A DNA stretch of 64,000 nt, from the NCBI GenBank assembly GCA_001643675.2, contig LSRY02000008.1, positions 186,001 to 250,000 on the forward strand, given 5' to 3'. Positions 6,275 to 62,218 of the stretch are shown here, piece by piece. The notes below the pieces were generated by a model, which searched no databases, was not told the DNA's origin, and was given only the letters and a program-made list of their open reading frames with translations. The first letter of the stretch is position 1; every line of letters starts with the position of its first letter. This DNA is from Monocercomonoides exilis PA203. Lineage: Eukaryota; Protista; Preaxostyla. Position numbers and translations under genes: made by a program.

Positions 6275-6279
<5 letters not shown>

Positions 6280-9007
6280 CAGCAGGCTCCAGCAAGTTCT
6301 CCAGCCGCATCTGGCAGAACGGACACACCCCAACTTCTTCACTCCACTCGCTTCCACACTCCCTGTGAAACGAATGCCCACAATGAAACACCTTTGCGCT
6401 GGATGGCTCCAATGAATTGTGGCAGATTCCACACACGTCTGGCACAGCCACATTGTACAGAAGGGTCGGATGCATCTTGATGTTCTCCTTCGGCACTGCT
6501 TCGATCAACAGATGGATGTATTTGCCATTCACTTCTCCCTCTGGCACGCCTTCGAATGGAGTGAAACCTTCCTCTTCTGCCTCCTTCCACGGCTGGTGCG
6601 TCACCGTCCCGTCCTTCTTCACCGACGACACCCGCCAGCAGCACGAGACACAGCCCAGGCGCAGTTCATCGATCCTCTCCAGACAGCAAGGGCAGAAAGC
6701 GCCACTCTCAGCAAGATCGTACTGCCGCATGCCCCACCGGCAGATCACTCTCTGCCCACACCCGGGGCACCCTTCGTTGTGGCACGTGCCTTCGATGCAG
6801 ACACCACGCTCCTTCAGACGCCACAGCTGCGCCGCACTGCTCGCTGCCTGCTCCACAAGCACACCAGACGCTGTCACATCCACATACGCAAGATCACTCT
6901 CACTCATGTTGCTCATCTCACTCATCCCATTTGTACATCTCATCCCACTCGTTCTGCTTCTTTCACTGCCTTCATTTCTTTCATTCCTTTCTCTCCTTTC
7001 ACTCCATCCACATCTGCTTACAGACACCAGATACACCATTGATCCTGGCCCCACCCCAACATCCTTCAGCACGTGTGTGTCCTTCAGCAGCCTTCCTTCA
7101 AACATCATCCTCATCTGACTCACCTCCACTCCTTTCGCTTCTGCTCTCACTTTCTCTTTCACTTCCCTAACTGTCTCTGTCCCATTCACTTCCACTTCCA
7201 CTTCCACTTCCATCTCCTTCTCTATTCCCTTCTCCTTCCCTTCCTCCTTCTCCTCCTTCTCCTCCTTCTCCTTCTCTTTCTCCTTCTCTTTCTCCTTCTC
7301 CTTCTCCTTCTCCTTCTCCTTCTCCTTCTCCTTCTCCTTCTCCTCCTCATTTGCCATCCTTCCATTGATAATCTTCACACGCATCCCAAACCAGCCCTTC
7401 TTCCTCATCAGCAGCTGTATCATCTCCCCCTCTCCTATCCCACACTCCCTCAGCTCCACCTCGTCTGCCAGCTCCTTCTCTCTCCACACAATCTGCTGCT
7501 GCTCCACCAGAATCCCTTCCTTCTCAGCCACTTTCTCCTTCACATCCTTCACACGTGCCACTGCCATGTCCATCTCAAGCCGCAGCGTCTGCCCGCTGCT
7601 CGTCTTCACCAGCACCTCCCTTTTCACCCCTGTTTGCGCTCTCACCACAAAATAGATGAACGAATTCTTCCCAATCCCAGCGCTCGAGACAGTGGCTGAA
7701 TCGTCCAAGTCTTTGCCTTTGAAGACCAGACGCTGCAGCGCAGAGGGCGTGCCGTCTTTCTCACTCACTTTCCCTTTCAGCTCCCTCACAGTTGTATGCG
7801 GACACACATCGATTTTGTAGTTCTTTCCTGTCATCGCTTTCACAATGACACTGAAAATGCTGCTTTCCTTCTTCTGCGCATTGAGTGTGACTTCGCTCTT
7901 CAAGCTGAATGAAGAAATTGGCTTTTCGTCCTCCATCGGCTTCCCATCCATTGCGAGTTCAATCTCATCTGCGCTGATTCCCATTGAAGGTGCTAGCTTC
8001 TCTTTTATTTCTGCCACTTTCATTGTACCTTCAGCTTCAATGCAAACATTCTTTCCTGCTGCATACTCAATTTTCAATGTATATGTTTTTAATCGTTCTT
8101 CGTATTCTTGGCATGTTGATTTGACAATTGAAGGTTGTGAGCTCGAGGAAGGACAAATAGAAGAAGAAGTTGAGGAAGAGGAAGAGGAAGAGGAAGAGGA
8201 AGAGGAAGAGGAAGATGAAGAAGAAAAAAAAAGGAATGGAAGAGATCCATGTGCAGGAGAACACGCTGGAGAAATATGTTGATAAATGCAACATGACATC
8301 CCGCTTTGTCCACAGTAAGTCAGCTTAGAAACTAGCTTTTCCTCGATACTTTCCTGAAGCTCGAAATGTCCACTTTTCCATTTCCCAACAAATTTGGAGC
8401 CCATTTCTGATACAAGTGTCATTTGCCCCGAATAAATTTGTAAATCCTCAAATATGCGCATGGCTAAATACGCAACATCCATATGCGGCTTAACATTTTC
8501 AACAACAATTATTTTTCCTTTTGCTTCTTTTGTGCAAACAGTCACACGAACAGCAAATGGTTCAACGCAATGTAACCCTGAAGAAAAAATTTCTCCAGCA
8601 TGTGACAAATGACTTTCTGTGTCCAACATAACGGAAGCACCAGCATTTGAATGTTTTTGCTTGATAAGAAAAATAGGCTCTTGAGATGACTATCATTGAA
8701 TAAATCCATTCAAAATGTTTTTCTTTTAAAAAAAGGAATTAAATTGAATTATTAATATTACCTGATTAATGTTGAAAACTTTGGCATTATCACAAATTTT
8801 CCTTTGCTTTTGAGAAAAGCATAAATCTCTTTCATCCATATCATATTTATCAGCAAATCCTCTTTTTACCCCTTTCATCAAATCATTAGAATTTAGTAGT
8901 AGTGTAATATTTTCTCCTTTGAACGTGCAAAATCGAAATAATCTACTCAAATTTGACATTTTTCGTTTATCTCTTTTTTCGATTCCCATAACTTTATCAA
9001 AAAACAT
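6275..9007 (-). CDS. Multi-ubiquitin-like-domain protein with a Cys-rich domain and C-terminal RING-H2 finger (putative E3 ligase)
   Basis: Exon 1 (9007-8762) and exon 2 (8689-6275) are joined by a phase-0 GT-AG intron at 8761-8690. Four clear Ubl units (e.g. TTVRELKGKVSEKDGTPSALQRLVFKGKDLDD) plus two divergent N-terminal ones. RING-H2 is CGIC...CGHSFHREC...CPFC. Confidence 0.85.
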
Positions 9008-24767: not shown

Positions 24768-27700
24768 AAAATTGAGTCAAATACTTTAAAAAGAAATGCT
24801 CCGTATTGCATTTTGTTTCAATTGATTTTGTCAATTGCAAAGAAGAAGCCGATGCTGACGAAGAAGAAGCTGATTCAAAAGAAGAAATATTTCTTTCAGA
24901 CAAAAAAATAGTTGAATTGTCGGAATCGATATTAAATAAATAAGTATGAAAATAACAACAATAAAAATCTATTAAATCATAAATAGTGTTAATTTCTTTG
25001 TTTCTTAAATAATGATTCAAAATGTTTGTTAACAATCCAAACTCACTGTCACAGTCGTTTTTACCGTGATGTTCGGCAAAAAACGACAATGAACAATGTT
25101 TGTTTTTAAACAAAATTGAATTTGGAGAAAACAATGAATACAAAATATGCGAATTACGGAAATGTGGACCATTATCACAAAAAAAAACAAAAATTATTAA
25201 CCTTCATAAAAATATCAAAACGTAACAATTTATTCAAACATTCCAAAACAAAACGGTAATCATGAGATAAAATCTCAGAAAAAAAATTAAAACAACATTT
25301 TTTCATTTTTCCATAATTATCAAGACAATACACAACAAAACATAAATGAGAAATCTGTTTCTTTTCAAAAAAACTTCTTCCAGTTTCATTAAAAGAAATT
25401 GGGAGAGACCAATTTTCTTTAAAATCCATTAATATAACACATTCATTCATTTTCAAATTATTTCTTTTAAAATTAAAAAAGTCTCTCTGGCTTTGTGCCA
25501 TTTTCTTATGCTCATTTATCAATCTTATTTCTTCTTTTTCTTCCTCTTTCAACTCTTTCTTGTTTTTTCTCAATTCTTTTTCTTTGTTTGTTAAAAAATC
25601 TCCTCTCACACACAACTCACAAAGATCAGTACGTTTTTTTGCTTTTTTGAAGTTTTTTGTCTTTTTGCAGAAAGAAGAATAAGACATTTTTATTTCAACT
25701 TCTTTTTTCATATCAGAATATAATTCTTTTTTTGTTTTCTCAATAATTCTTTTTTCTGAGAAGGAGAATATTTTTTCTTTGTTAAATTTTTGATATCCTT
25801 AGTTTTTTTCTTTATTATTAATATCTTCTTTATTTTTTTCTTCATTGTTTTTATCTTCTTTATTTTTTTCTTCATTGTTTTTATCTTCTTTATTTTTTTC
25901 TTCATTGTTTTTATCTTCTTTATTTTTTTCTTCATTGTTTTTATCTTCTTTATTTTTTTCTTCATTGTTTTTATCTTCTTTATTTTTTTCTTCATTGTTT
26001 TTATCTTCTTTATTTTTTTCTTCATTGTTTTTATCTTCTTTATTTTTTTCTTCATTGTTTTTATCTTCTTTATTTTTTTCTTCATTGTTTTTATCTTCTT
26101 TATTTTTTTCTTCATTGTTTTTATCTTCTTTATTTTTTTCTTCATTGTTTTTATCTTCTTTATTTTTTTCTTCATTGTTTTTATCTTCTTTATTTTTTTC
26201 TTCATTGTTTTTATCTTCTTTATTTTTTTCTTCATTGTTTTTATCTTCTTTATTTTTTTCTTCATTGTTTTTATCTTCTTTATTTTTTTCTTCATTGTTT
26301 TTATCTTCTTTATTTTTTTCTTCATTGTTTTTATCTTCTTTATTTTTTTCTTCATTGTTTTTATCTTCTTTATTTTTTTCTTCATTGTTTTTATCTTCTT
26401 TATTTTTTTCTTCATTGTTTTTATCTTCTTTATTTTTTTCTTCATTGTTTTTATCTTCTTTATTTTTTTCTTCATTGTTTTTATCTTCTTTATTTTTTTC
26501 TTCATTGTTTTTATCTTCTTTATTTTTTTCTTCATTGTTTTTATCTTCTTTATTTTTTTCTTCATTGTTTTTATCTTCTTTATTTTTTTCTTCATTGTTT
26601 TTATCTTCTTTATTTTTTTCTTCATTGTTTTTATCTTCTTTATTTTTTTCTTCATTGTTTTTATCTTCTTTATTTTTTTCTTCATTGTTTTTATCTTCTT
26701 TATTTTTTTCTTCATTGTTTTTATCTTCTTTATTTTTTTCTTCATTGTTTTTATCTTCTTTATTTTTTTCTTCATTGTTTTTATCTTCTTTATTTTTTTC
26801 TTCATTGTTTTTATCTTCTTTATTTTTTTCTTCATTGTTTTTATCTTCTTTATTTTTTTCTTCATTGTTTTTATCTTCTTTATTTTTTTCTTCATTGTTT
26901 TTATCTTCTTTATTTTTTTCTTCATTGTTTTTATCTTCTTTATTTTTTTCTTCATTGTTTTTATCTTCTTTATTTTTTTCTTCATTGTTTTTATCTTCTT
27001 TATTTTTTTCTTCATTGTTTTTATCTTCTTTATTTTTTTCTTCATTGTTTTTATCTTCTTTATTTTTTTCTGCGATATAAAATACAGAATAGATTTTTAT
27101 TAATAAGAAATATTATTGAAGAAGAAAGGATCACACTTTTTTTTGAAATTCTATCGTTTTGACAACTACAAGAACTATGGGCTAAAAGCCAACTTTCTGC
27201 CAATGTGAAATCATTTGCTTTTTAAGAAAGAAAGAAATAAAGAAAGAAAAAGAAAAATAGAAAATTTAACACATTTCATATAAGAAAATCAAACCTTTTT
27301 GTAAGCTTTTTTCTGACATTTCAAACTGTTTTTCTTCGTTTGGATCACAATGTTTTCTTCTTGAGTAATAATACTCTGCTTTCGTAATATTCCATCCGGA
27401 GTTTTGCAACTCCTGGAAGGAAAAATCAGAAGAAACTGAGTTCAAAATGCAGACTTTGGCATTGGTTTTTGACGAATTGTACAGCTACAATAATTTGTTT
27501 AATATGTTCGTGGTTTTTTCTTTATATGCGAAGAAATCATAAAAAATTGAAAGATAAAATAAACCAATGGATCACAATGAAATAAGTGAAAATAAAATTA
27601 AAAACAAACTATTAAAGAGAGCAAAAATCTCATCGCGAAACGGTTTTCCTTTTTTGGAGTGGTATAGGAAATTTAAAAAACACCCTTTGGGGTCATCTTC

Positions 27701-31532: not shown

Positions 31533-32362
31533 GGCATAGGTGTATTTAAGGTCCTTTTCCATTACTAGATTATTCATTAAAACATTATGATATATAAAAA
31601 GTAGATTTAATAATAAAACATTTGTATGGACTGGATTTTTGAAATTCTTTTTAAATCTTGTGAAAAAGCGATTTTTAAAAATCACCCATAAATCTGAGTA
31701 TTTTTCCAAAAAATATATAAAACAAGATAATTATGAAACAAAAAGTGGATTAAAGGTTATTAATTATTATCTACTCTTATTATATTAATGATTTTTCAAA
31801 AAATAAAACATTAAAAAAATAAATTATATAATTAAGATGTTTTGATCAACCCCACAATTATATTTTTTATATCTAGTAAATTAGAATTTGCTTTCTTTCG
31901 TCAAGAATTGAACCCTCGCTTTCGAACATATAACAAATCATATATATAAATATAGTTTTAAAGTGAATGTTGAATTATTATCAATGTGTCATTAAAATCT
32001 TTATGAATTTTGTTTATGATTTTAAAGATGAAAACTTTTGTGCAGCGGTTGGATATTCTATTTAAACCATGTTGATAATGAATATCGAAGCTCTTACAAA
32101 GTGTGCGAAACTTTCTCATTAATAATAAACACTGTTTCATTAAAATTTTTGACAAAACTCATAAAATATCATTTATTTTCGTTTAAGCATAACGAATATT
32201 GAAGTCGAGGCTATAATCAACATAGCGGCATCAGAATAAGAGGAAGAGAAATTAAGATAGATAAAAGAAACGAATAATAAAAGACACACGCAGTTAAGTT
32301 AAAGGTCAATGCCTACTCTACATAAGCTCTAAAAGATATTTTTTGAATGAGACAATATTGGA

Positions 32363-34232
32363 TTGAAGAACAATTTAATGAAATTCCAGTTTAATCTTTG
32401 GGAAGGCCGTAATGCACGGATGAATGCGATTTATGGAATTGATGGTTGTAACCACACAAATGATGCAGATCTTATTGATTTTGTTACGATCCATCAGAGC
32501 GAAATGGTCATTGTGAGCAGTGGGAATGAATTGAACGGGAAGCAATGTTGAATTAACACATTTCCATATGATTCGATTGATTATGGACTGATGCATTTAA
32601 CTTCAGATTTCATGAGTCTGATGCTCATTGTTGAGGAGAGTGTGATTTGTGAAGAGATAAATCTGGAGGAGATGAGTTTGAGCTCGAAGAGCAGAGGCTT
32701 ATGTGAGGTTAAAGTGAAAACTGGTATTGAAAAAACAAAGGATGCATTGGTTACAACAACCGGAACAGTCTCATTGGTGAGAATGAGTTTTGTGTTTGAT
32801 TCGAATTTCATTTCTTCACATGAATCGCTGATATCACCAGAGGGAATGATTCTAGAAATAATGAATTGCTCATTTGACTCAAAACAGTTGATGGAAGAAG
32901 AAAAAGTTGCTTTTGCATATGTTCAGTTCCACATAATTAAAATGGATAATGGAGAATTACAACTTGATGGATGCACTATATCAAATCTCATTCTTCATAA
33001 ATCGATTTTATATCTTTCATCTTCACTTCTGTCAACAGTTGATTCGATAACGATTTGCAATTCAACAATCTCTCATTCACTTATTGAAATTATTGAATGC
33101 GGACAATTAAAAATGGACAGATTTAATACTGAAAACATTTCAGTTGAGGGAAATGGAGAATCACTGATATCGTGCCTGTCAATGAAAAAGACAATTCAGT
33201 TGACAAATTGCACAATTGGTGGAGTCAGTTCAAACACCGCAAAAGGAAAATTGATAAAACTGGAGAATTGCACAGATGTGAAAATGGACAGTTGCATTTT
33301 TAATGGAAATTCAAAGGAAAGAAACGAGAAGAATTTGAATGAAGGGGAAGAGATGTGCAGATGGTCAGGATCTCTTGTTGATGTTGTAAAGAGTTCTTTA
33401 ATTATGAAAGTTTCAACATTATCAAATTCACCAGATGGTGGAGTCACAATGAGTGGAGGAAATGTTATAATTGTTAAAGGAGAGTTTATAAATAACAATC
33501 CATCCATTGAAGGATATTCATCAGTGAGAAGGAATATCATTTGCACAGATTCAGGAACATTGAATGTGATGAGTTTGAAGGGAGGAGATGGATTGAAGGA
33601 TAACACATCTCTTTGGATGTTGAATGAAGGGTGCAGTTTTGAAGGGATTGTTTCTGAGAGAGATTCATCATTTTTCATTCCTGTTCTGGAGAGTATAGAA
33701 GCCAAAGAAGAGATTGATTGAATGAAGCTTTCATTCAAAGGATTGCTTCTTGTTCCATGCAATCTGTCATTCTCAGTTGTGAAGAGGAATGGAGAAGAGA
33801 AGGAGATTGAACATTATGATTTTGACTCAATTGGATTCTTGTCAGAAAGAGAAGCAGAAGGGAGCGTGGCAAAAGATCTCCTCAACAGTTGTGGAGATGA
33901 AATTGAAGTGAGTGTTTCAATTTTGTTTGGGAATTCAAATACTCTCTTCTCAACAAATTCATTCATCCTGAAGAATGCAAGTGAAACAAATGCAAATGGA
34001 AATGAAAGGATTGTTGAAGGAGGAAAAGAAGGAAAATCTTATTGGTTGTTGATTGTTATAATTATGCGTATCACATTGACAATCGTTCTTGTTGTATCCG
34101 TTGTTCTTACATTCGGTGAAGGAAAGTGAAGGAAAGAAATGAAGAATTGCAAGAGGTTGTGAATGAAACAGTGAAAAAAGATCCGGAGCTGATTGAGATT
34201 GTGACTACGAATATGTCACCAAAAGAGCGATG
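32363..34232 (+). pseudogene. Cargo: fragment of a receptor-like gene (ectodomain, TM, juxtamembrane), kinase-like region missing
   Basis: Homologous to 48650-50649 (SSFFIPVLE; ERIVEGGKEGKS; TM; NETVKKDP). In-frame TGA at 32549-32551 and 33719-33721; frameshift near 34110. Confidence 0.8.
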
Positions 34233-34242
34233 AAAGAGAGAG

Positions 34243-34273
<31 letters not shown>

Positions 34274-34497
34274 AAGAAAGAGAAAGAAAGAAAGAGAGAG
34301 AGAGAGAAAGAGAGAGAAAGAGAAAGAAAGAAAGAAAGAGAAAGAAGAGATAGAGAGAGAGAAAGAAAAAGAGAGAGAGAGAGAGAGAGAAAGAAAGAAA
34401 GAAAGAGACAGAAAGAGAAAGAAAGAGAGAGAGAGAGAAAGAGAAAGAGAAAGAGAAAGAAGAGAAAGAGAAAGAGAGAGAGAGGAAAAAGAAAGAA

Positions 34498-34534
<37 letters not shown>

Positions 34535-34575
34535 AGAAGAAGAAGAAGAAGAAGAAGAAGAGGAAAAGGAGAGAG
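34233..34575. repeat. GA/GAAA/GAA-rich simple repeat at the junction of the two cargo fragments
   Basis: Nearly purine-only tract on the plus strand. Confidence 0.85.
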
Positions 34576-35450
34576 AGGCGATGCATGTGGAGGAAGGGGA
34601 GATGGAGAAAATGAAAGGGGTTGGTCAACAAGCTCAGGAGTTGCCGAGCAGCTTGGCAAAGGATTGTCTGAAGCAGAAAGATGCGCATTCTGTTGTTGAA
34701 GCAACCGAAGTGGCAAAGAAGAGGAGGAAGAGGAGGAAGAATTAGACAACCATTGAGTTGAACCATTAACCAAAGCAGGTCCATCCCCTTCGTGTCCATG
34801 TCTGTCTCTGCTTTGGCTTCTGCATCTGTCTCTGCCCCTGTTTCTGCTGCTAGCGTGCTCACAAACTGTGGGTTGTCCTTCGGAAAAGGAGAGGGCGGAA
34901 GAGATTCCTTCTCAAACCGATGCTCGCTCGCAAACAGCTGCTCTGCAGGCACAATTATGTCCATCCGCTTCGCTTTGTTCCTGGGGGAACAAGATGATGC
35001 AGCCATCTCAGCTCCATGTGAACGCTCATCAGAGCAGTTGTGCCTGCGATGCTGCCTGTTGACTCCCTGTGAATGATGATGATGATGATGGTCAGACGGC
35101 AATTGTGGCTGCTGCCGAGATTGTTGTTGAGATTGTTGCTGCAGCATTTGCCGGGACTTGTGGCACTGTTTGCTGCCTTGATTGCTGTGATGGTTGTGGT
35201 GTTGGTGGTGGTGGTGGTGATGATGATGCAATTGATGTGGATGACAATCTTGAGGAGCGCGTGCATGTCCATTGCCTGTGTTCATTTTCGTCTTTGACTT
35301 CAATTTCTCTTTCTGTGGTGATGGACCTGTTCCAGTTTCTGTTTCATGTCGCTGTTGTGTTGCTTTCAGAGCGCGATGTTCGCATGAACAAGTCGAAGAA
35401 GAAGATGATGATGATGAAGATGATGATGAGGAGGAGGAGAAGTGATGCAA
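34576..35450 (-). pseudogene. Second cargo fragment: His/Gln/Ser-rich coding-like sequence
   Basis: Higher-GC open frame with poly-S, poly-H and Q-rich tracts, unrelated to the receptor gene, lying inside the TIRs. Confidence 0.45.
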
Positions 35451-36429
35451 TTTTTGAAAAAGGAAATAAAGTTGACAGAGTTTCTGGTTATCATTGAATT
35501 AACAAAACTTTTGTTATTATTTTTGAATGATCCAACAATTGAAACATCTATTTGATAGATATACCTAGAAAAAGAGCACTTGGTATGCGTTCAATGAAAT
35601 AACAATTTGGATTTCGGAGTGAAAAAAACTGTTTTCACAATTTTTATTTACATTTTATTTTTTTTGTTAAAAGTATTATTATTTTTAATCTATTCATTTA
35701 ATAAATAAAAAAGCTACAAAAATATGAAAAGTTACTGGTATTGACCAAAAAGAAAACAATTATCATCCGTATTTTGCTGAAAAAAGCAATAAATTGAAAA
35801 TGAATAAATCAAAACAAATCAAATGAACTTTAAAAAAAGTTATAATCTTATAAAAAAACATTCATTATCAATAGTGATCGTTCATCAATGCATATTTGAG
35901 AAGAAAGCCAATAAATATTAACAAAAAAATCCTTTGTAATTCAATGAAGCTATGAAAAAGCAGTTTGAGTGAATTTTAACATGGAATCACCTGCGTATAA
36001 AAGTTTAAATATATATGGAAAAGAAAAGGTGGCATCGGAACACTTTGACATTGTGAAAAATAAAAAAAAGCAAATACTAATTTTTTGGTTATTAAAAATA
36101 TAATTGTGGGATAGATCAAATAATTTTATAGTTTTAATTTATTTTTCAAAATGTTTTATTTTCTGAAAAATCATTAATATAATAAGAGTAGATAATAATT
36201 AATAACCTTTAATCCACTTTTTGTTTCATAATTATCTTGTTTTATATATTTTTTGGAAAAATACTCAGATTTTTGGGTGATTTTTAAAAATAGTTTTTTC
36301 TCAAGGATCAAAAAGAATTTCAAAAATCCAGTCCATACAAATGTTTTATTATTAAATCTACTTTTAATATATCATAATGTTTTAATGAATAATCTAGTAA
36401 TGGAAAAGGACCTTAAATACACCTATGCC

Positions 36430-45547: not shown

Positions 45548-47897
45548 TCATAAAAACAACTTTTCGTTGGTGCATGAAACGAGGTTTGTGACTGAAAAAT
45601 TTGAGGGGTTCGAAAGCTGCAAAGCCAGCTGGTTGACGGAAGAGCTGAGGGAATGTTGCTGAGGAGGTGGAGGAGAAGGAGATAAAGATGAGTGTGATCT
45701 TTCAGGAACGGACAATCTCCCATCATTTGAAAACACTTTGTCTTCCAACAATGTATCTATATCCTCATCTTCATCACTGTTGAAAGCGGCCTTTGAGATT
45801 TGTGGAGAAGCAGAAGAACACGCCTTCAGTGCAGATCCATTTGCCACATTCATTCCATCCACAGGAACACCTTCCAAAATCTCAATCAGCACCGACACTA
45901 AGCTCACCACAGCTGCTGCTGAAATCCCCACCGATGCGACTCTTCCGTCTGATGAAGCAGCACTTGCCATTCTGAACACACATCTCCTTGCCATGCTGAA
46001 CACGTGGCTCTGTTGGTGCATGGCTGTGATGCGCGTTTCCATCGACTGCTCACATCGCTCCAAAGACTCCTTCACTGTCACCTGCTGCCTGGGCGTGGCA
46101 AAGGAGGTGAACTGCTCAATAACAAAAGGGCGACCGAAGTCAACAAGAGGAGGATGAAGAGGGAGGAGATAAGTGTGATGATATGTGTTGACTGCATAAT
46201 GATTAGCAAATGAGGAAGAGGAATAGGGTGAAAGCTGTGTGGTTGTTGGAATTGGGCGGAGGGAGATACCAGAAGTGTTGTTTTCTTCACTCGAAGAAGA
46301 GGGAGGCTTTGTGGATGTGCTTGGATGCATCACAAAAGTTGCCACTCGTACGTAGTGAACAGATAAAGTGGAAAAAGAGTTTAGAAGAGAGGATGTATTG
46401 TCAGATAAAGTGTTGGTTAATTTGGCCATTGAAGTTGAACGAGAAGAAGCCGCGCCTGTCGAAGAAGAGGAGGATGACGTGGTGGAGGAAGATGATGAAG
46501 GAGAAGTTGGCATTATAGGAGCCAGTAATACAGAAGACGATGAAGCAGAATGTGAATAATCCAAAGCACTGCTTTCACACCCAGCCTCTTCTGCGCCAAA
46601 GAAGTCATCTCCTTGAAGAATGCCAGTGGAGACAAGATCGGGTTGACTGCATCAACCAGCAGATTGAACACCTTCTGTGGTCCACTGTTGATGATGCTTT
46701 CGTCCATCATCGTCCGCATCAGAGACGATGGGGCTGCGCTGTATGCCTCGCTGATCTTTCGAATGCAGTGCCCGCTGAGCATCCAGCCAGCACTGCTGAA
46801 CAGCTAAGATTGCAGCTGGCTGCTGTTTGTGGTGAACATATCGTGCTGCTTGGCTGTCTTGCCTGCTCTGCTCTCCATCTGCTGTGATGCACAGGAGAGG
46901 ATTGGATTGACCAGTAGCTTGATGTCTTTGGTGAGTGGTGAGAGGAGAAGAGGTTGTTTGAGGTGGAGAAGAGGGGGACAGACAGATGCAGGGCAGTTGT
47001 GGCAGAGACAACTGCATATGAACCTGTGTTTCAGAACTTGTGTGGTATCTCTAAAAGCTCTCAAATCTGAAGTGAAGAAAAGGATGGAGCACGAATTGGT
47101 TTATAAGCATGTGATGGTGATGTCTTGAATGATGATGAAGAAGAATCACTCTTTCTATCTGCACTGCAATGCCCATCTTCTACCGAAAGAGTGGCAAGTG
47201 TTGTGACATTTTCAGATTGATAATCGAACTGTTTTGTGCTTGCCTTGAACCCTGACTTCGTGCATCGTCGACCTCGCTAAGTGTCCCCAGCACTGCAACT
47301 GTGACGTCAATTACTTCAATTCTGTCCAAAAGTGTTTACGGTTCAAGCTGCAGTCCACTTTCTGAATAAGAATCAGCTGATCTTCTGAGTGGAAGGGAAG
47401 CAGCACGGACAGAGAGAGACTTATGCACAGAGAGGGAGCTGAGGAAGGCAGAGGGAGAGTTGGGTGAGTTTGACTGTTCAGAGGAAGTGATGGAAGATGG
47501 GCTGTCAGCGTAGCCGGGAGATGGGGTGAGTGAAGAAGAGGGACAGATGGCAGAAGAAGAGGAAGATGTGGAAGAAGAGAATGAAGAAGGAGAAAGAGGA
47601 ATGGGAAATGGAGAAGGAGGCAGGGATTGGGGAGTGGACATCTGGGAGGAGATTGTTTGGGGTGGAGAAGAGGGGGAAGGAGAAGATGGCAGATTGGTGG
47701 GTTGTGAGGGAGAAGTTTGTGAGGGTGATGGAGGCATGGGCAGAGAGGAAGAGGGGGCAGTGGCGGTGGTGGTGGTGGTTGGGGAATGGTGGGTGGATGG
47801 TGCAAGTGGAGGAATAGATGGAGGCAGCAGAGTTGCGTTTGGCAGTGAGGAGTGGACAGCCGCTGAAGGGGATGATATTAAGTCAGCATATTCATAA
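45548..47897 (-). pseudogene. Fragmented Ser-rich hypothetical gene abutting the fold-back element
   Basis: Consecutive minus-strand ORFs (47737-47336, 47064-46804, 46782-46513, 46564-45548) linked by frameshifts. Confidence 0.4.
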
Positions 47898-48649
47898 TGA
47901 GGTGTTGATGATATTGAGACTTGTTATTTCACAGGCGAAATAATTGCATATTGAATTTTCGGCATATGTGTAACTGCGTCCCTTTTGTAATTCTTGTTTT
48001 TAGACATTAATTTTGTGATATTTGAAATGCAAAAATTATTTAAAAACTTTTGTATGGACTGGTTTTTCGAAAAATTTTTTGTTTCTCATGAAAAAACCAT
48101 TTTTAAAAATGACCCATAAATATGAGTATTTTTACAAATTTTCAATAAAATAAGATAATTATGAAACAAAAAGTAGATGAAACGTTATTAATTATTATAT
48201 ACTCTTATTTTATTGATAATTTTTCAAAAAATAAAACATTAAAAAAAATAAATTATAAAATTAAAATATTTTGATCAATCCCACAATTAAATTTTTAATA
48301 TCAAAAAAATAAAAAATTAGTTTCTTTCATCGTGAATTGAACCCTCGTTTGCGAACATATAACGAATCATATATATAAATATAGTTTTAAAGTGTGTGAT
48401 AAATAATTATCAATATATCATTCAAATCTTTATGAATTTTGTTTATGATTTTTAATATGAAAATTTTAGTGCAGTTTGAGGATGTTTATGTTACACAATT
48501 ATGATCATGAATAAAGAAGAACGAACAAATCGTGTGAAACATTCTTTTTAATTATTAACATTGTTTTATTAAAATTTTTCGCAAAACACATTAAATATCA
48601 TTTATTTTCTTATGAAATTAAATAGATGCTAAATGATAAGCATTAATCA

Positions 48650-50649
48650 ATGCAGCAACATAAATGCGTATGGAGGAATGGTGTATTTTCAACAATAGAG
48701 ATCGTGAAGTTTTGGTTTATATCTATTGAAGAAAAGTTCAATGCCACAACAGCAACAGTTGGAAATGAATTTTTTGTTGAATATTTCAACATCTCAACGC
48801 AGATCAATGAAAGCCAATTCCAGTTTGATTTTCGAGAAGGAAACTTCAATCAATTCAATGCAATATATGGAGGTGACAGTTGTGAACACAAAGAATACAC
48901 AAATCTGATTGGATTTGTAACGATTCATCAAAGTGACACAATCATTGTGAGCAGCGTGAATGGAACGAATGACAGACAACGTGGAACAAACACACTTTCA
49001 TGTGATTCAATTGAACGGGGTTTGATTCACTTGACATCAGAGCTGATAAGTCAGATTCTCATTGTTGAAGAGAGTGTGATTGGAGGAGATATAAATCCGA
49101 ATGAGATGGGTTTTAAAGGGGGAGAAGGAATGGAGAAAAACACATCTCTGCGGATATTGGATGAGGGATGCAATTGGGAGGAATAGCGAGTGAAAGAGGA
49201 TCATCATTTTTCATCCCTGTCTTGGAAGAAGTGAAGAGCACAACACAGGCGAGTGGGAGCATGGACTTGAGCATTCGTGGGAAGCTGCTTCTTCCTCACA
49301 AATTGTCACAAGAGATAAGTATGAAAGATGGGGATGAAGAGGAGATTGTGAGAAAAGGGATTGAAGAAGAAGGGTTTGTGTCAGAGAATGAGATTCACTC
49401 AGTTATTTCATGTTCAGAATGGGAGAAAGTGAGAGAAGAGACAGAAGTGAGTGTGTGGGTTGTGTTTGGGAAAGCAGATTCACTGTCATCAACAGACCGA
49501 TTTATTGTGAAGAACAAGAGTGAAAGTATTGGAAAAGGAGATGAAAGGATTGTTGAAGGAGGGAAAGAAGGGAAGTCTTCTTTGTTGTTGATTATTATTG
49601 TGCTTGTTGTGATATTATTGATAATTCTTATCTCACTTGTGATATTTGTTGTCAGATGGAGAAAGGCAAAGAATGAAAACAAAGATCTGAGAGAGATTGT
49701 GAATGACACTGTGAGGAAGGATCCGAAGGCATTCGAGATGGTGACGATGGAGATGTCACCAGAGGAGAAGTGGAGGAGAGCGGAGAGAGAGGCAGAGAAG
49801 AAGAATGAAGAAAGGATAAAGAAAAGAATATATGAGACGAATATGGAACATTCAGAGTCATCTGAGCATCTTCTGTCAGAGAGCGGATCGACTGAATACA
49901 TATTGGGAAGAGATTCAGACAAAATTCCTGATTGGGCATTGGAAAAGGTGGATGAAAAGGAAGAGGAGGAAGAAGCAAGAAAGAGATCGCCTTCACCTTC
50001 CATTTCATCCAATTGTTCAACTGATTCAGACTCAACGTTTGTTCGATCGGAGAGTCTGTGCCCAACCACCTCATCTATGTCAAACTTAGTGGATGCAATG
50101 GCCTGTTCATTACCCCACGAGAAGCTGATTGTGGATTTGAGGGATTCACTGTTCATGCTGCTGCATGGAAGGAACGAGAAGAAAGAGATGGCGATTGGCT
50201 CATTGAAGGAGAGAGAACAAACAGCTGCCCAAATCCTGTTCTGTGTGGCGAATCTCGCACTCCACTCCGTTGACGAGATGGAAAATCCTCTCTCATCTCT
50301 TGCCAATCTCAGCCCACACATTGTGTTGTTCTCTGAGCACATGGTGATCTGCATTGCCCTCCACTCCGACTTCTCATCTGACGATGATTCCGATTCCTCA
50401 TCCATCTCCTCGTCAACTGTTGCGACATCTGCCAGTGATGAGGAGGAGGAGGAGGAGGACTCTCTGCCCTCGTCTGCCTTTGAGGATGAGGATGACAATT
50501 TCAAGAAGGAGTGCCTGAGGTGGAAGGCGCCAGAGCTGATGATGAACAAGAAGATGGGAGCAACAAAGGAATCAGTTGTGTTTTCGCTTGGGATGATGTT
50601 GTGGGAGTGCTTGACACTCAAAGTTCCGTTTGGGGAGGATTCAGCATAA
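48650..50649 (+). pseudogene. Receptor-like tyrosine-kinase-type pseudokinase, truncated and frameshifted (left arm)
   Basis: TM helix LLLIIIVLVVILLIILISLVIFVVRWRK; kinase subdomain VIII/IX motifs LRWKAPE and VFSLGMMLWECLT..PF; no HRD or DFG. Frameshift near 49175 and premature TAA at 50647. Confidence 0.8.
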
Positions 50650-51399
50650 GCAGCTGGGCAGAAGATTTTGAATGGAGAGAGATCGAATGTGAAAAAAGTC
50701 GAGTGGTTTCGACTGAAAGGAATGGTGGAAAAAAGTGTTCTGGTTCAGATGCCAGGCAGAGTATCATTTTCAGAAATGAAAGGAGAATTTATTTGGTAAT
50801 TACTTGCGAAGGCAGCAATGCTGATAGTGTCAAATGCGATGTGCTATGCAGGGGGAATTTGAGAAGAAAGAATCGATTTCTTTGCTCAAAAAGACAACAG
50901 AATAGTGGAGTGTGTTCTGATAGATGAGCACAAAGACATTATCGTTGTTGGCAACGGGAACAGCACAAACAACAAAAGCGATAGAAATTGAAAAGACAAT
51001 TTTGAAACAAATGAAATGTGTATTTGTGAGTGCATTTATGCATGGATCGTTGCATGAAAATATATACCTCAAATCGAACTGAAATGAGATGATGTTTATT
51101 ATTGTTTCGAATTTGTATAATCGTTTCGTTGGACTAACTCTTTAATTATATATTAATTGATGAATCAAATTGATGCTATGAATAAACCACAAGCATTTTT
51201 TGAATTTTCATTTTTTTGATGTGTTTTGAAACAACAAAAAAATGTGCAAATAATATTTAAATAAAATATATTTTTCTTTCTTTAAAAATTCAAAATGAAA
51301 AAGTGCATATTTCACTCGAAAACATAAAAAAAGAGAGCCATTATTAATATATATTAATTCAAATTTTTAAAACTTTTGCAAAGTCGATCCATATCACAA

Positions 51400-52886
51400 A
51401 TGGTTGAAAACAAATCATTTGAAAAAGAATTAACATTCAGTGAGTTTTAAATGCGATCGAATGGGAAAAAACAGTTGGCTATTGAATTGCTTTCCAAATT
51501 TGGGATAATAAAAAGGAATCGAATGTGCTGGAAATGCGAAAAAGCAATGGAATTTAGGATGCAAAAAAAGAAAGTGATTTCTATGCTTATAAATGCACGA
51601 AATGTGGGAAAAATTACAGCTTGAATTATGATTCAATTTTTATGGAATTTCATCTTTCACCATTCAAACTTACATCATTGTTATATCATTTTTGGTACAA
51701 ACACTCAATAAAGGAAGTCACTTTTGAATCGAAAATATCAAACAAAACAGTAATGAAATTATTTGAAAAGTTAAGAAGAATATGCTGTTATTTTGAAACA
51801 TTCGAAATGGAAAAAATCGGAAAAGATCGAATAATGGAAATAGATGAAACTTTAATTCACAAAAGAAAGAACGGTGTTGGGAGATGCAGAGAACAGCAAT
51901 GGCTATGTGGAGTAGTAGAGAGAAAAGAAATTCTAAAGCCACAAAAATTGATTGTCGAATTTCTTCCAGATCGAAAAGCTGATACCATATTATATTTTGT
52001 TAAAAAGAACATTGAAAGATCTTCAACTATTATGTCTGATAAATGGTCAGCATATAACTGAATTAGTGAAAACGGCTTCACCATTGAAAGTGTTTATCAT
52101 TCTCTCAATTTCGTTAAGCCTGAAAATCCTAAAGTTTTCACTCAAACAATCGAAAGTGTGTGGTCTCATCTGAAAAACCACATTCCAAAAAAAGGAAGAA
52201 CATTCATTAAGACGAAAGAATATGTTTATGAATTTCAATATAAATTCAACAACAGACTCACACTTACAGCGTATATAAAGGAACTTTCAAAAATCAGCAA
52301 GAAAAGTTTGGATATTTTTCTTCGTTCTTACAACGAAAGCGTTGCAAGTTTGAAAAGCATTCTTCTGAAAGAAAGGAAATTTAAACTGTCTTCTTATTTA
52401 TTAAAGAAATTGGAATTGAGAAAAAGAAACAACTATGAAATGTGTGATGAAAATGAACTTGATGAAATGTTGAAGAAAAAAAGATCATCAAAGCTAATAT
52501 CAAAAATAAAAGAATCAACAAATTCAAAAAGAAGATAATTAGATGATGAAGAAGTGAAAGAAGAAAAAGAAGAGAAAGAAACAGAAACAAAAGTTGAAAC
52601 TGAAGATGATATATTTTCATCAGACTTTGATTACAAAACTGCAAGAAAGAAGAAAAAGAAAAGATATAGATCATGCGAAGGAAGATTTTCGAAAAGCAAC
52701 GACAGCCAACAGTCAAAAACGTTAGAGTTTGAAACCCTATAGTTTTGTGAAAAAAAAGAGAGAAAGATTGAAGAAATGGAGAAAAAAGAAAAAGATAAAA
52801 CAAGTGCAATTCTTAATCGAAAAATACTCAGAAGTTTTATTAAATCAACAAATATTGGAACAGAACAGTCTCCAATAAATTTGTGA
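51400..52886 (+). mobile_element. Merlin/ISXO2 (IS1595 family) DDE transposase, decayed
   Basis: Zn ribbon CWKC...CTKC (with a frameshift in an A run), then EIDET, RKNGVGR, WLCGVVER, SDKWSAY and TQTIESVWS. In-frame stops at 51448, 52059, 52536 and 52740. Confidence 0.9.
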
Positions 52887-53310
52887 ATTTTTATTTCACA
52901 ACACTATCAATCACATCACATAATGATCTCGTTGCAAAAAAAAAACTGATTAACACAAGTGTTCGTAAATGAATTTCAAATAAAAACAAACTTCATTTCC
53001 TTTTCGTGAAATGTGAATTACACATTTCGATATAAATGTGCAAACATTCTTTTGATCGTAAACATAAATAAGTCCATACGTATATCCATCTACATATAAA
53101 TTATCATTTGCTTCATTATGTTGTTCCAATTATGCTTCAGAGACACAGATTGGCATTGACATTTGCTTCACTTATTTGTTCCATCTTCACGCACAAGACA
53201 CAAAAATGCTCAGACAATGCACTCTTTCCAATGGACTCTGCTGCAATCCCCATTGTATCAGTCATTGTCTTCACAGTTGCACATTCCGGAAAATCTTCAA
53301 TCAGCACACA

Positions 53311-55436
53311 CTATATTTCCACGTGCGATAGTCCGTCTTCAAGATCCGATAACACACTCATCTTCATAACTGCCTCAAATGTGTTCCTTGAAACCCCCTT
53401 CATGTCTGGCCTCTTCCCATTCACAATCTTCTGTCCTTCCATTTCTGCCTCATACTCCCCAAACGGAATCTCCAGTGTCAAGCACTCCCACAACATCATC
53501 CCAAGCGAAAACACAACTGATTCCTTTGTTGCTCCCATCTTCTTGTTCATCATCAGCTCTGGCGCCTTCCACCTCAGGCACTCTTTTTTGAAACTATCTT
53601 CATCCTCAAAGGCTGACGAGGGCAGAGAGTCACTTTCATCATCATCATCACTTGCAGATGTCACAACAGTCGATGAAGAGATGGATGATGAATCTGAACT
53701 ATCATCAGATAATAAGTCAGAATGCATCACAATGCAGATGACCATATGCTCGGAGAACAGCACAATATGCGGACTCAGATTGGCAAGAGAAGAGAACGGA
53801 TTGTCCATTTCATCAAAGGAGTGGAGAGCAAGATTAGCCACCCAGAACAGGATCTGCGCAGCTGTCGCTTCTCTCTCCTGAAAGGTGCCAATTGCCATCT
53901 CTTTTTTCTCGTTCCTTCCATGCAGCAGCATGAACAGCGAATCCCTCAGATCTACAATCAGCTTCTCATGAGGCGATGAACAGGCCATTGCATCCACTAA
54001 GTTTGACATAGATGAGGTGGTTGGGCACAGACTCTCCGATCGAACAAACGTTGAGTCTGAATCAGTTGAACAATTGGATGAAATGGAAGGTGAAGGCGAT
54101 CTCTTTCTTGCTTCTTCCTCCTCTTCCTTTTCATCCACCTTTTCCAATGCCCAATCAGGAATTTTGTCTGAATCTCTTCCCAATATGTATTCAGTCGATC
54201 CGCTCTCTGACAGAAGATGCTCAGATGACTCTGAATGTTCCATATTCGTCTCATATATTCTTTTCTTTATCCTTTCTTCATTCTTCTTCTCTGCCTCTCT
54301 CTCCGCTCTCCTCCACTTCTCCTCTGGTGACATCTCCATCGTCACCATCTCGAATGCCTTCGGATCCTTCCTCACAGTGTCATTCACAATCTCTCTCAGA
54401 TCTTTGTTTTCATTCTTTGCCTTTCTCCATCTGACAACAAATATCACAAGTGAGATAAGAATTATCAATAATATCACAACAAGCACAATAATAATCAACA
54501 ACAAAGAAGACTTCCCTTCTTTCCCTCCTTCAACAATCCTTTCATCTCCTTTTCCAATACTTTCACTCTTGTTCTTCACAATAAATCGGTCTGTTGATGA
54601 CAGTGAATCTGCTTTCCCAAACACAACCCACACACTCACTTCTGTCTCTTCTCTCACTTTCTCCCATTCTGAACATGAAATAACTGAGTGAATCTCATTC
54701 TCTGACACAAACCCTTCTTCTTCAATCCCTTTTCTCACAATCTCCTCTTCATCCCCATCTTTCATACTTATCTCTTGTGACAATTTGTGAGGAAGAAGCA
54801 GCTTCCCACGAATGCTCAAGTCCATGCTCCCACTCGCCTGTGTTGTGCTCTTCACTTCTTCCAAGACAGGGATGAAAAATGATGATCCTCTTTCACTCGC
54901 TATTCCTCCCAATTGCATCCCTCATCCAATATCCGCAGAGATGTGTTTTTCTCCATTCCTTCTCCCCCTTTAAAACCCATCTCATTCGGATTTATATCTC
55001 CTCCAATCACACTCTCTTCAACAATGAGAATCTGACTTATCAGCTCTGATGTCAAGTGAATCAAACCCCGTTCAATTGAATCACATGAAAGTGTGTTTGT
55101 TCCACGTTGTCTGTCATTCGTTCCATTCACGCTGCTCACAATGATTGTGTCACTTTGATGAATCGTTACAAATCCAATCAGATTTGTGTATTCTTTGTGT
55201 TCACAACTGTCACCTCCATATATTGCATTGAATTGATTGAAGTTTCCTTCTCGAAAATCAAACTGGAATTGGCTTTCATTGATCTGCGTTGAGATGTTGA
55301 AATATTCAACAAAAAATTCATTTCCAACTGTTGCTGTTGTGGCATTGAACTTTTCTTCAATAGATATAAACCAAAACTTCACGATCTCTATTGTTGAAAA
55401 TACACCATTCCTCCATACGCATTTATGTTGCTGCAT
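53311..55436 (-). pseudogene. Receptor-like pseudokinase, right-arm copy
   Basis: Identical in translation to the left copy up to ...DAMACS, including the frameshift; diverged in the kinase-like region. Confidence 0.8.
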
Positions 55437-56125
55437 TGATTAATGCTTATCATTTAGCATCTATTTAATTTCATAAGAAAATAAATGATATTTAATGTGT
55501 TTTGCGAAAAATTTTAATAAAACAATGTTAATAATTAAAAAGAATGTTTCACACGATTTGTTCGTTCTTCTTTATTCATGATCATAATTGTGTAACATAA
55601 ACATCCTCAAACTGCACTAAAATTTTCATATTAAAAATCATAAACAAAATTCATAAAGATTTGAATGATATATTGATAATTATTTATCACACACTTTAAA
55701 ACTATATTTATATATATGATTCGTTATATGTTCGCAAACGAGGGTTCAATTCACGATGAAAGAAACTAATTTTTTATTTTTTTGATATTAAAAATTTAAT
55801 TGTGGGATTGATCAAAATATTTTAATTTTATAATTTATTTTTTTTAATGTTTTATTTTTTGAAAAATTATCAATAAAATAAGAGTATATAATAATTAATA
55901 ACGTTTCATCTACTTTTTGTTTCATAATTATCTTATTTTATTGAAAATTTGTAAAAATACTCATATTTATGGGTCATTTTTAAAAATGGTTTTTTCATGA
56001 GAAACAAAAAATTTTTCGAAAAACCAGTCCATACAAAAGTTTTTAAATAATTTTTGCATTTCAAATATCACAAAATTAATGTCTAAAAACAAGAATTACA
56101 AAAGGGACGCAGTTACACCTATGCC

Positions 56126-56903
56126 CTAGTGTAAGTGCATTTCAAATGTTGCAACAATCCTTCAATTGTATTTGAATGCACACCAGTTTCAGTATTCCGG
56201 AATGTCTATCATGGCATACAGTTTGATGTTTTTATCCAAGAGTTTCCAGTGAAGAATGAGCGCTCCATTGATCGGAAATTATTATTATTCCAGCTTTTAT
56301 GTATTTGTGGATAGTTGGAATCAAAGTTTCCTTTTTTCTGTTTGGAACGACAACCATAAACCGTTTCCCCGCTCCCACACCCTCTAATCTTTCCACCCCT
56401 CCGAAAATCCACACTTGCTTTTTCTTTCTTCCTCTCCTGTACTTCCGTTTTCGCCAAATTGCTTCATCAATTTCAACTGTTGTTCCCTCGCCTCCAATAA
56501 CTTGCTGTCTTTCGTTCCACATTTGTGAGCAAGCGCACCGAATCACACTTCCCCAGTATCCGACTGTGTCCTTATCAACAGAAAGAAGCAAAGAAATTGT
56601 TTTGTTTTGAATCCCTAGCCAGTAATATAAACAAATCAGAAGAGTGACTCCTAGTCCAATCTTTATTCTGCAAAAAGATGTCCCTGAAAGAATGCTTTTC
56701 TTAATCTTGCATTTTGGACAAGCATAATAGTGATAATTCTTTTCATGATATATTCGTTGATAGCATCTGTGAACTCTGCACATTGGGAGGTTCATGGCTA
56801 TTATTTCTTTTTTGAACCATTCCCATGCGCTGGTTTCGTTGAAGAAGAGTTTGTTCAGCGAAGAAATGTTTTCTTCATCATGAAGGTCTCGTTCGCGTGC
56901 CAT
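56126..56903 (-). mobile_element. Second Merlin/ISXO2 transposase, 3'-truncated at the end of the fold-back element
   Basis: CRVH...CPKC, VEIDEAIWRKRKYRRGR, WIFGGVER, SDQWSAH, then a stop and frameshift to GVHSNTIEG. The frame runs into the TIR at 56125. Confidence 0.9.
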
Positions 56904-57829
56904 AAGATCAAAAAAAAAATACGAACACTTAATACAAATAATTAACAAAAATTATTATGAGAGAAAATATTTTTCTTCAAAATTTCATTCAAATAATAAA
57001 ATTTTCTGTGGATTTTTATTTGTATATTCTTTAATGATAATATATAACAAATTGAAATATAATGATAATAATCATTTTTGGTTGTGCCGATATGATCGGA
57101 TCATTACAAGATGACTAACACATAACACATTAACATTAACATTTCATTTTTCAGTAATTTCATAACGTGAATTAAAAGAGCCCATAATCAATGTTTTTTT
57201 GACTTTGGAATACTTTTGTATTTTCATAAATCATTTTTGAGCAAATAATTGAACAACGCTATTCTAATGTCAAAAAAAAAGGGAATGAAATGAATGCTAT
57301 GAATTCAAAGAGGGATGGCTGTGATATTGCAGAGGCTGTGCATTGCAGGTTCATATTTTTGAAAGATCCTATTTATTTTTATTCGATCCTATTTTTTTTA
57401 AAAATCAATAATTCAGCCACACACATTTTGATTGATTGAAAGTTTTTTTTTCGTATTTAAGAAAAAACGTTATCAGCTGAACAATTTCATTTTAATTCAT
57501 CGCCTGGTTTTCGTGGGAGAAAATGAGGGAGTTAAAAGCCTCCCGTTGAATTTTTTATCGATTACAGATTGGTTCTAATGAATTAAATTCAATAAAAATA
57601 TGCAATTAATGTACAAAAAACTAAATTTCAATGAAAATTGAAATTTATAATAAAAAAATAAATAAATTGGCTCAATGATCATGACTCAAAAAATAAAAAA
57701 TAAGAACTGAAGCAGCTGAAAAATCTACTGCGTGTCAGCTAAAGCTGCGGGATACGATGATATCATTCAAATACAGACAATAAAGGATTTCGCTGGAACG
57801 TATTTCTTATATAGTTAACGATGGAGCTG

Positions 57830-61810: not shown

Positions 61811-62218
61811 TATAGTATCTTTCATAATAGGCGGACACTTTCCTAATGACAGGACAGAAGCCTTTTCTCAGCAGCTAATGAATGTAGAATTTTGATTTTT
61901 TCCAACATCAATCGTAAGGTGAATATGAGTAATGAAGCATTCTGAGAATACTTCATTCTTGTTCATTCATTTTTTAAAAATAAATTTTGTTTTTCGGAGA
62001 AATAGGAAATCATTTGTTTTTTCGAATTCCTCCGAAATACAAAATTTATTTTTAAAAAATGAATGAACAAGAATGAAGTATTCTCAGAATGCTTCATTAC
62101 TCATATTCACCTTACGATTGATGTTGGAAAAAATCAAAATTCTTCATTCATTAGCTGCTGAGAAAAGGCTACTGTCCTGCCATTAGGAAAGTGGCAACCT
62201 ATTATGAAAGTTACAATA
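61811..62218. repeat. Long inverted repeat (hairpin): ~190-bp arms, ~30-nt spacer
   Basis: 61819-61999 pairs with 62030-62210 with few mismatches. Confidence 0.92.

Follow-up and report, generated by a model that had tools for sequence, protein, structure and literature searches.

What is the large inverted structure that surrounds a Merlin transposase in the genome of the gut protist Monocercomonoides exilis PA203, and does it multiply receptor genes? The window analysed here is 64,000 nucleotides long (contig LSRY02000008.1, positions 186,001 to 250,000), and an earlier note on it described a fold-back Merlin element that carries a receptor-pseudokinase gene in each arm and duplicates a receptor family.

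Structure and state of the element

The inverted arms begin at 47961 and 56125 (Table 1). The claimed arm match of 2,150 bp with a T/G difference at base 7 is exact: this is the first mismatch, and the next is at base 2151. The outer 2,150 bp therefore contain one mismatch (at the level of the assembly, where polishing could hide a few differences), an inverted match far beyond chance. Only the near-perfect part ends there, as the alignment of the arms runs to 2,721 bp in total (47961–50681 vs 53411–56125), with identity dropping to 82–89% beyond the first 2,150 bp.

Table 1. Features of the Merlin element and its surroundings (window positions)
Feature	Position	Strand	Basis
Whole Merlin element, 8,165 bp, dead copy (G000:C80:233961-242125)	47961..56125	.	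end-to-end sister alignment; flank comparison
Left flank: different multi-copy repeat (236 candidates); other copies match as far as the element end	47400..47960	.	
Left arm, homogenised zone; outermost part with GG-starting terminus plus ~690 bp of non-coding, AT-rich DNA	47961..50110	+	
Left cargo, truncated receptor-pseudokinase fragment	48650..50800	+	profile match, translation
Left arm, inner zone; coding patch of the kinase remnant, 82–89% identity to right arm	50111..50681	+	
Merlin/ISXO2 DDE transposase pseudogene	51400..52886	+	profile match, translation, sister alignment
Right cargo, same fragment; ORFs 54900-55436 and 53311-54918 (535 aa)	53311..55436	-	
Right arm, inner diverged zone	53411..53975	-	
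Right arm, homogenised zone; family terminus at its end	53976..56125	-	
Right flank: transposase from a different Merlin family, truncated at the element end	56126..56948	-	
Second family member, 4,897 bp, no transposase, ~367-bp arms, perfect 8-bp duplication	31533..36429	+	

The central ORF is indeed a Merlin/ISXO2 transposase, matching the ISXO2 domain PF12762 at E 3e-9 (7e-21 in an intact sister). One base is lost from an A run near 51565, and in-frame stops stand at 52059, 52536 and 52740. A sister on contig C13 encodes an intact transposase of 513 aa, to which the pseudogene is 96% identical in DNA across the first 961 bp. The translation from the window has all three motifs with the D-D-E catalytic residues, as do the C13 and C20 proteins, and the intact transposases of the family (507–530 aa) have a dN/dS of 0.07–0.10. 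Relatives outside M. exilis are distant, with transposase identities of 42% or less among the best 150 matches. The copy is dead and was formerly autonomous, as had been proposed and as the intact C13 sister supports.

The reported lack of closer terminal inverted repeats also holds, as no inner inverted pair around the transposase is longer than one 14-bp AT palindrome. Likewise, no target duplication flanks this copy (the flanking bases agree at 3 of 8 positions). It is a rearranged copy, one of the two explanations offered earlier, since it is bordered on each side by a different repeat that breaks off at the element boundary. A search for a reciprocal partner for the missing duplication found none.

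Receptor sequence is present in both arms, but as fragments and not as the genes that had been claimed. The cargo is 5'-truncated and has an internal deletion of ~300 codons, and a 1-bp frameshift near 49185/54901 is common to both arms. In the left arm an ectodomain piece (48650–49186) is followed by the frameshift, the ectodomain end, a membrane helix near 49580–49660 and a kinase C-lobe remnant, with a premature stop at 50647–50649. Likeness to kinases is limited to the last ~85 residues (best ILK and BTK, E 3e-6; Pfam positions 162–242), and the family consensus has none of the active-kinase hallmarks N-lobe, HRD and DFG. The predicted structure of the remnant (pLDDT 43.5) is too poor to use. 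The best 120 matches of the cargo are all from M. exilis; it is a host gene fragment lying within the element ends, and full-length parents occur elsewhere in the genome.

A mobile family with receptor cargo

The family termini are terminal inverted repeats starting with GG, and the terminal 12-mer occurs 63 times forward and 62 times in reverse across the genome (3 and 5 for a control pattern). Among 35 paired elements examined, out of about 60–100, perfect 8-bp target duplications were found in 20, and matches at 7/8 or better in 24, against 0 and 0.06 in a shuffled-flank null. Receptor-family sequence occurs in all 35. A transposase is present in ~24 of the paired elements, 11 of which were read, and these 11 large copies carry the same transposase subfamily. 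The association of the ends with one transposase subfamily and with receptor sequence is genome-wide, and neither of the two computable checks that could have refuted the earlier note did so.

Arms range from 0.2 to 3.7 kb (3.77 kb in one sister), with 0.2–0.5 kb in short members. Short derivatives devoid of a transposase use the same ends; the one within the window (31533..36429) carries a single receptor fragment that stops just past the membrane helix. The only internal tandem repetition in the arms consists of short two-copy repeats confined to the non-coding end. A promoter scan with bacterial models, which are not relevant to M. exilis, gave nothing above chance.

The C13 and C40 copies are 99.88% identical and occupy different sites with different perfect 8-bp duplications. 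Given this identity, the separate duplications and an intact transposase in one of them, the whole two-armed unit appears to transpose as one. The element at 47961–56125 aligns end to end with three sisters at 83–84% identity. It is one of six double-kinase elements, which form a single clade (97/98) of the midpoint-rooted transposase tree, apart from the one-kinase elements; four of the six align end to end. Double-kinase elements have ~480 bp behind the transposase in common, which one-kinase elements lack, and one deletion junction is common to six elements.

The host receptor family

The family from which the cargo comes is the largest receptor gene family of the host, with at least 1,252 candidate receptor/kinase loci. 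Of the 140 best kinase matches, 114 sit in open frames of 2,000–4,200 codons and 3 fall in known elements. Ten identical neighbouring kinase pairs occur among these matches, all of them inverted, which shows arm-like copying to be general in this genome.

If the element were the main vehicle of receptor family expansion, delivering two working genes per jump, receptor sequence would be expected where it is found, in every element examined, and the 12.9-kb C25 copy does have open frames of 695 and 686 aa, one per arm. However, even the longest cargo (~1,870 codons) begins at an internal point of the host protein and falls short of the host frames, which have 2,500–4,200 codons, most cargo across the family is frameshifted, and ~24 transposase-bearing loci compare with at least 1,252 kinase candidates. 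The sample of 140 matches further suggests that most intact receptor genes have none of these ends less than 1 kb from their start. Because the cargo is 5'-truncated, mostly broken and accounts for at most about 4% of receptor-family loci, a role as the engine of expansion, which the earlier note favoured, is not supported and is very unlikely.

Concerted arms and probable paralogue patches

Within an element the arms are near-identical, while between sisters the transposases differ by ~4% and the arms by 12–34%. The arms at 47961–56125 are 66–90% identical per 400-bp window to those of its sisters, compared with 96% for the transposase. In a tree of the ends, left and right group by element in 10 of 11 elements. 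The C40 and C25 copies are 99.5% identical in ends and core and 80–83% in the kinase; the two C25 arms are 99.9% alike despite this divergence. On such patterns, the arms of these elements evolve in concert. Left-right mismatches concentrate in the outer 20 bp (21, vs 3 across the following 100 bp; p 5e-14), which fits homology-dependent copying, as this should fail at the extreme ends.

Within the C40/C13 copies, the sole difference between the two arms is a block at 1812–2318, with identity on either side. Cargo patches of this kind have a dS of 0.6–1.2 and a dN/dS of 0.07–0.13 (0.13 between the left and right inner zones of the 47961–56125 element), the changes falling mostly in third positions and the residues being mostly ones common in host paralogues. 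As dN/dS is about 0.1, the kinase patches probably derive from working paralogues; local hypermutation was rejected as their source because the differences are mostly silent. Near-identical donors for three patches were sought by scoring 40 of ~1,000 candidates each, and none exceeded 90%. The nearest non-element matches are 87% on contig C32 for the left inner patch and 89–90% on contig C36 for the right. A quick tree that leaves many forks open places the kinases of the elements at scattered positions among 120 host proteins (9 changes, of which at least 3 are forced). This arm-to-arm copying with patching from paralogues, which the earlier interpretation missed, is the real interest of the element.

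Near-identical arms in almost every copy could also arise if every transposition rebuilt the arms anew, a fold-back single-strand intermediate being one conceivable route, such that arm identity dates the last transposition only. But C13 and C40, which a jump separates, retain the same 500-bp patch in one arm, the arms at 47961–56125 are identical around a transposase with four lesions, and mismatches persist at the very ends; per-jump rebuilding is already strongly disfavoured, with a very low probability. Less probable still is a composite or chance structure, in which an unrelated Merlin transposase would lie inside a fold-back palindrome left by repair or between a pair of short non-autonomous elements. 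The missing target duplication, the many inverted receptor pairs in the genome and the left 1.8 kb shared with short elements would suit it, but end-to-end sisters carry perfect duplications, one transposase subfamily occupies all 11 large copies that were read, and the transposase lacks ends of its own. The composite reading is refuted for the family, and the earlier suggestion of two joined elements is not supported, given the single clade and end-to-end alignments of the double-kinase copies. The assembly is Nanopore (PMC8767320), yet a long-read fold-back artefact is the least credible explanation, given a 2.7-kb unique spacer between the arms, inner arms that diverge by 11–18% in the manner of sequence under coding selection, and the recurrence of this layout on several contigs, where the duplications differ.

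Proposed history

The most plausible explanation, held with good confidence, is that a cut-and-paste Merlin lineage captured part of a receptor/kinase-like gene and fixed it as cargo inside its ends, the arms then being copied mutually and patched by paralogues. The M. exilis lineage would have taken up this piece of a giant gene family long ago and carried it since just inside the element ends, the DDE transposase family moving the whole unit and leaving the 8-bp duplications observed. Layouts and the transposase tree suggest an older arrangement in which one arm bears the kinase and the other is a 5' stub, the direction of change being inferred. In one subclade, made up of the 47961–56125 copy and five more, replacement of the stub would have brought the kinase remnant into both arms. 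The observed near-identity of arms while sisters diverge may be kept by break repair or gene conversion templated by the opposite arm, in the way put forward for Galileo, which would also lengthen the arms. Cargo blocks are, as a pattern, replaced in one arm by divergent versions under purifying selection and later spread to the other, probably by conversion from working host paralogues, which number over a thousand. In the now dead 47961–56125 copy, a later adjacent deletion or recombination would have taken away one original flank. The element would thus be selfish, a passenger sampling the receptor family and not a producer of new working receptors. It is rather improbable that the elements serve as a mobile receptor archive, and not just as sinks, with arm patches converted back into expressed full-length receptors, or that transcription of the convergent arms yields long dsRNA or truncated membrane-anchored decoys that tune the family, the host tolerating or favouring them.

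Relationship to known elements and significance

Inverted arms that conversion keeps identical are also a feature of large palindromes, for instance on the human Y chromosome, but these are fixed chromosomal structures and not mobile. The elements described here agree with the Merlin superfamily in the same genome in having a DDE_Tnp_IS1595 transposase with D-D-E, GG-starting ends and 8-bp duplications (PMC8101967). Published Merlin arms measure 24–462 bp, and 23–29 bp for most of seven M. exilis families (Lopes et al. 2021, PMC8101967). In contrast, arms here reach from 0.2 to 3.7 kb and include host coding cargo; the reported 24–462 bp range, which is descriptive and not defining, is exceeded by the 2.7-kb arms in the window, while short members lie in or near it. 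Five peptide motifs of the transposase and the terminal 12-mer are absent from those parts of the Lopes et al. 2021 supplements that were available (PMC8101967).

Galileo/Foldback elements of the P superfamily likewise have long, variable arms, which extend by recruiting internal sequence and for which repair from the opposite arm is proposed, and post-recombination copies lacking duplications (PMC3573991). Galileo arms reach about 1.25 kb, consist of non-coding DNA or tandem repeats and are longest in non-autonomous copies (Marzo et al. 2013, PMC3573991), whereas here arms of up to 3.7 kb with host gene pieces surround intact transposases. Foldback/Galileo elements also differ in their P-element-type transposase, 7-bp duplications and internally tandem-repetitive long arms, as opposed to ISXO2, 8-bp duplications and arms not built in this way. 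Pack-MULEs, including the tandem-TIR PM-ZIBP, are terminal-repeat elements with host gene fragments (PMC3310237), but are non-autonomous, depend on a Mutator transposase and hold the fragment between the arms; here the arm itself contains the cargo, which occurs in autonomous copies too and is rewritten. The IS1595-family transporter IS MTnSag1 and tISCpe8 share the transposase family, 8-bp duplications and a passenger gene, but are bacterial, with 25-bp arms and a single intact passenger (PMC5704250). Mutually copied, paralogue-patched arms of kilobase length are not described for Merlin in the literature searched.

The known arm length of Merlin is thereby stretched about eightfold, and an autonomous Merlin is seen whose ends incorporate coding sequence of the host. 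Among the unclassified repeats (35%) for which the genome paper noted an overlap with kinase genes, a part can now be named, and the Galileo repair model of arm growth is tested in an unrelated superfamily. Three clocks run in every element (transposase core, arm vs arm, and cargo vs host paralogues), which makes it a natural experiment in which rates, tract lengths and end effects of conversion between the arms are measurable from sequence alone.

Structure of the window copy

In an ungapped comparison, the two arms of the element differ at base 7 and next at base 2151, in agreement with the earlier note (a match of 2150 bp apart from a T/G difference at base 7), and they stay alignable out to 2,721 bp, with 82–89% identity beyond the homogenised zone. 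Each arm has ∼690 bp of AT-rich non-coding DNA, followed by sequence from the giant receptor/kinase-like family (partial ectodomain, membrane helix and kinase remnant). The claim of a receptor-pseudokinase gene in each arm holds for the family and the non-coding stretch but not for a whole gene. The window cargos (the receptor-pseudokinase sequences within the arms) are gene fragments. Aligned with the family's longest cargo, they begin to match at residue ∼876 and skip residues ∼1010–1310, and both arms contain a 1-bp frameshift, to which the left copy adds an early stop. Similarity to real kinases is confined to the last ∼85 residues of the kinase part, and neither the N-lobe nor the HRD and DFG motifs are present, as throughout the receptor family. 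As had been noted, no inner ends were found flanking the central transposase, which is broken, and no target duplication was found outside the element. The window copy is a dead element.

On the right, the element abuts a transposase of another Merlin family that is truncated at the junction; on the left lies a different repeat, and its other copies match as far as the element end. Since two different repeats are cut at the ends, one original flank has been lost, via adjacent deletion or between-copy recombination, and the suggestion of a rearrangement is borne out to this extent. A genome search found no reciprocal partner for the missing duplication. Duplications are commonly absent from elements larger than 7 kb (6 of 13).

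Features of the window and of two related loci
Position	Feature	Details
47961–56125	Window copy, 8,165 bp	Arms start at 47961 and 56125
51400–52886	ISXO2/Merlin transposase, broken	Central ORF; one frameshift, three stops
31533–36429	Second family member	
6275–8629	784-aa ORF	Four ubiquitin-like stretches, C-terminal RING finger
20209–22677	822-aa ORF	About 25 repeats of 90 bp; Pfam search, no convincing match
25623–27100	15/30-bp tandem array	Long; several frames open
61811–62218	199-bp inverted repeat	94% complementary; 10-bp spacer
C25:1201151–1214079 (L006–L007)	12.9-kb double-kinase element	3.9-kb short member nested inside; both cargo frames open (695 and 686 aa)
C7:1625522–1636938 (L027–L028)	Third end subfamily	

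Family census and mobility

In the genome, the terminal 12-mer is present in 63 forward and 62 reverse copies (control, 3 and 5), mostly in facing pairs 2.5–14 kb apart. The genome-wide search with the first 300 bp, proposed earlier as a check, gave 194 candidates. The sample consists of 35 paired elements picked by end similarity (both window members and 33 others). Perfect 8-bp duplications were found at 20 of the 35, and at least 7/8 matches at 24 (shuffled flanks, 0 and 0.06). All 35 contain receptor-family sequence, and eleven large elements have the same transposase subfamily at their centre; ∼24 loci carry it genome-wide.

The window copy can be aligned over its full length, first base to last, with copies on contigs C13, C40 and C25 (83–84%), which speaks against two elements having been joined. 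Those on C13 and C40 are 99.88% identical, each with its own, different perfect duplication, and the C13 transposase is unbroken (513 aa, all three catalytic motifs); dN/dS of intact transposases is 0.07–0.10. The unit of two arms plus cargo is therefore a genuine transposon, and appears to have moved recently. An assembly fold-back cannot account for such copies.

In most short members lacking a transposase, comprising two end subfamilies (L004, L005, L013, L017, L018, L025, L030–L032, L036 and the second window member), receptor homology stops at one and the same point, shortly past the membrane helix. Arms of 200–330 bp characterise a third end subfamily, which carries other receptor-family parts (L021, L027–L029, L033, L034, L040); one of its copies has a related transposase (45–50%) directly beside the left end. 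The assembly holds 575 candidate ISXO2 transposase loci, well above the ‘over 100 copies’ reported on an older assembly, and several are identical inverted pairs.

Origin of the two-kinase layout

Six elements carry a kinase in both arms (window, C7, two on C25, C13, C40), and the transposase tree groups them in one starred clade; four with one kinase arm and one stub arm (only the 5' part of the cargo) make up another, and the most distant element is also one-kinase. The stub group has up to 2.2 kb of common DNA downstream of the transposase, where the double-kinase clade has its own ∼480 bp instead. One deletion junction is common to six elements, and such deletions are inherited. In the C20 element, one arm has a shortened start, and the other arm combines this start with the old stub. 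The simplest reading would be a single capture, followed by inward growth of the inverted region until the kinase was included, the direction being inferred from a midpoint root.

Cargo patching

Blocks of cargo (patches) have been replaced by divergent versions. Between the C40 element and the 8.2-kb C25 copy, identity is 99.5% in ends and core and drops to 80–83% in the kinase, while the arms of the C25 copy are 99.9% alike. In C40 and C13, the left and right arms differ solely at 1812–2318, and are identical on both sides of this block. Patches and the window inner zone show dS of 0.6–1.2 with dN/dS of 0.07–0.13, compared to a dS of 0.10 between the window and C13 transposases, and most changed residues are common among host paralogues. 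These values reject mutation in place, and we infer copying from working genes. In a quick tree, element kinases lie interspersed with 120 host proteins. What counts against such copying is a donor search with three patches, which found no match above 90% (40 of ∼1,000 candidates scored for each); the donors could be mosaic, made up of short tracts, or could lie among the unscored candidates or have been lost. The nearest host matches of a kinase patch group by contig, with at least nine on C32 for the left patch and about fifteen on C36 for the right one, which suggests chromosome-specific receptor subfamilies.

Concerted evolution of the arms

The window arms differ from each other at 1 of 2,150 sites, yet match those of the closest sister elements at only 66–90% per 400-bp segment; the transposases of these sisters are 96% identical to that of the window copy. 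When the outer 400 bp are placed in a tree, the two ends of an element pair with each other in 10 of 11 cases. Across the 35 elements, the outer 20 bp hold 21 left-right mismatches, compared to 3 over the following 100 bp (p = 5e-14), whereas between-element differences are evenly distributed. Copying that depends on homology should fail near the flanks, which explains both this excess and the T/G difference at base 7. If reads were ambiguous, polishing could mask a few inner arm differences, but it should resolve well over 20 bp beside unique flanks. Equalisation by jumping itself is rejected, as C13 and C40 retain the same one-arm patch.

Among the best 140 of at least 1,252 host kinase hits there are ten identical inverted pairs and none in direct orientation, suggesting that the arms are homogenised by a general process of the host and not by the transposase, and that inverted paralogues are homogenised genome-wide. 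The ten pairs of neighbouring receptor-kinase domains (C47, C36, C6, C9, C58, C22, C26, C70) are 4–27 kb apart, with identical scores and ranges.

Receptor family and known systems

The receptor/kinase-like family is the largest in the M. exilis genome (PMC6759080), and its overlap with unclassified repeats was noted in the genome paper (PMC8767320). The best 120 matches of the cargo protein are all from M. exilis. At least 1,252 candidate loci match the kinase part; among the best 140, open frames of 2,000–4,200 codons contain 114, and elements identified here only three. Even the longest cargo starts internal to the host protein, and the elements’ share of kinase loci is at most about 4% (the ∼24 transposase-bearing loci). 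The proposed vehicle duplicating the receptor family is thus not supported, and the elements are not the engine of this family.

In its transposase, its catalytic residues, its GG-starting ends and its 8-bp duplications the family conforms to Merlin, but its arms (196 to 3,766 bp across the 35 elements) depart from the reported 24–462 bp (PMC8101967), and a text search of the supplements did not find it among the seven M. exilis Merlin families of that study. No close transposase relatives were found beyond M. exilis (identity did not exceed 42% in the top 150 matches), and a literature search of incomplete coverage found no reports of Merlin elements with captured genes. Galileo is similar in arm growth and arm-to-arm repair (PMC3573991) but is P-type, while Pack-MULEs (PMC3310237) and bacterial IS1595 passenger elements (PMC5704250) likewise carry cargo, though between short arms. 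The giant-armed Merlin is a real variant, with gene-bearing arms that evolve in concert.
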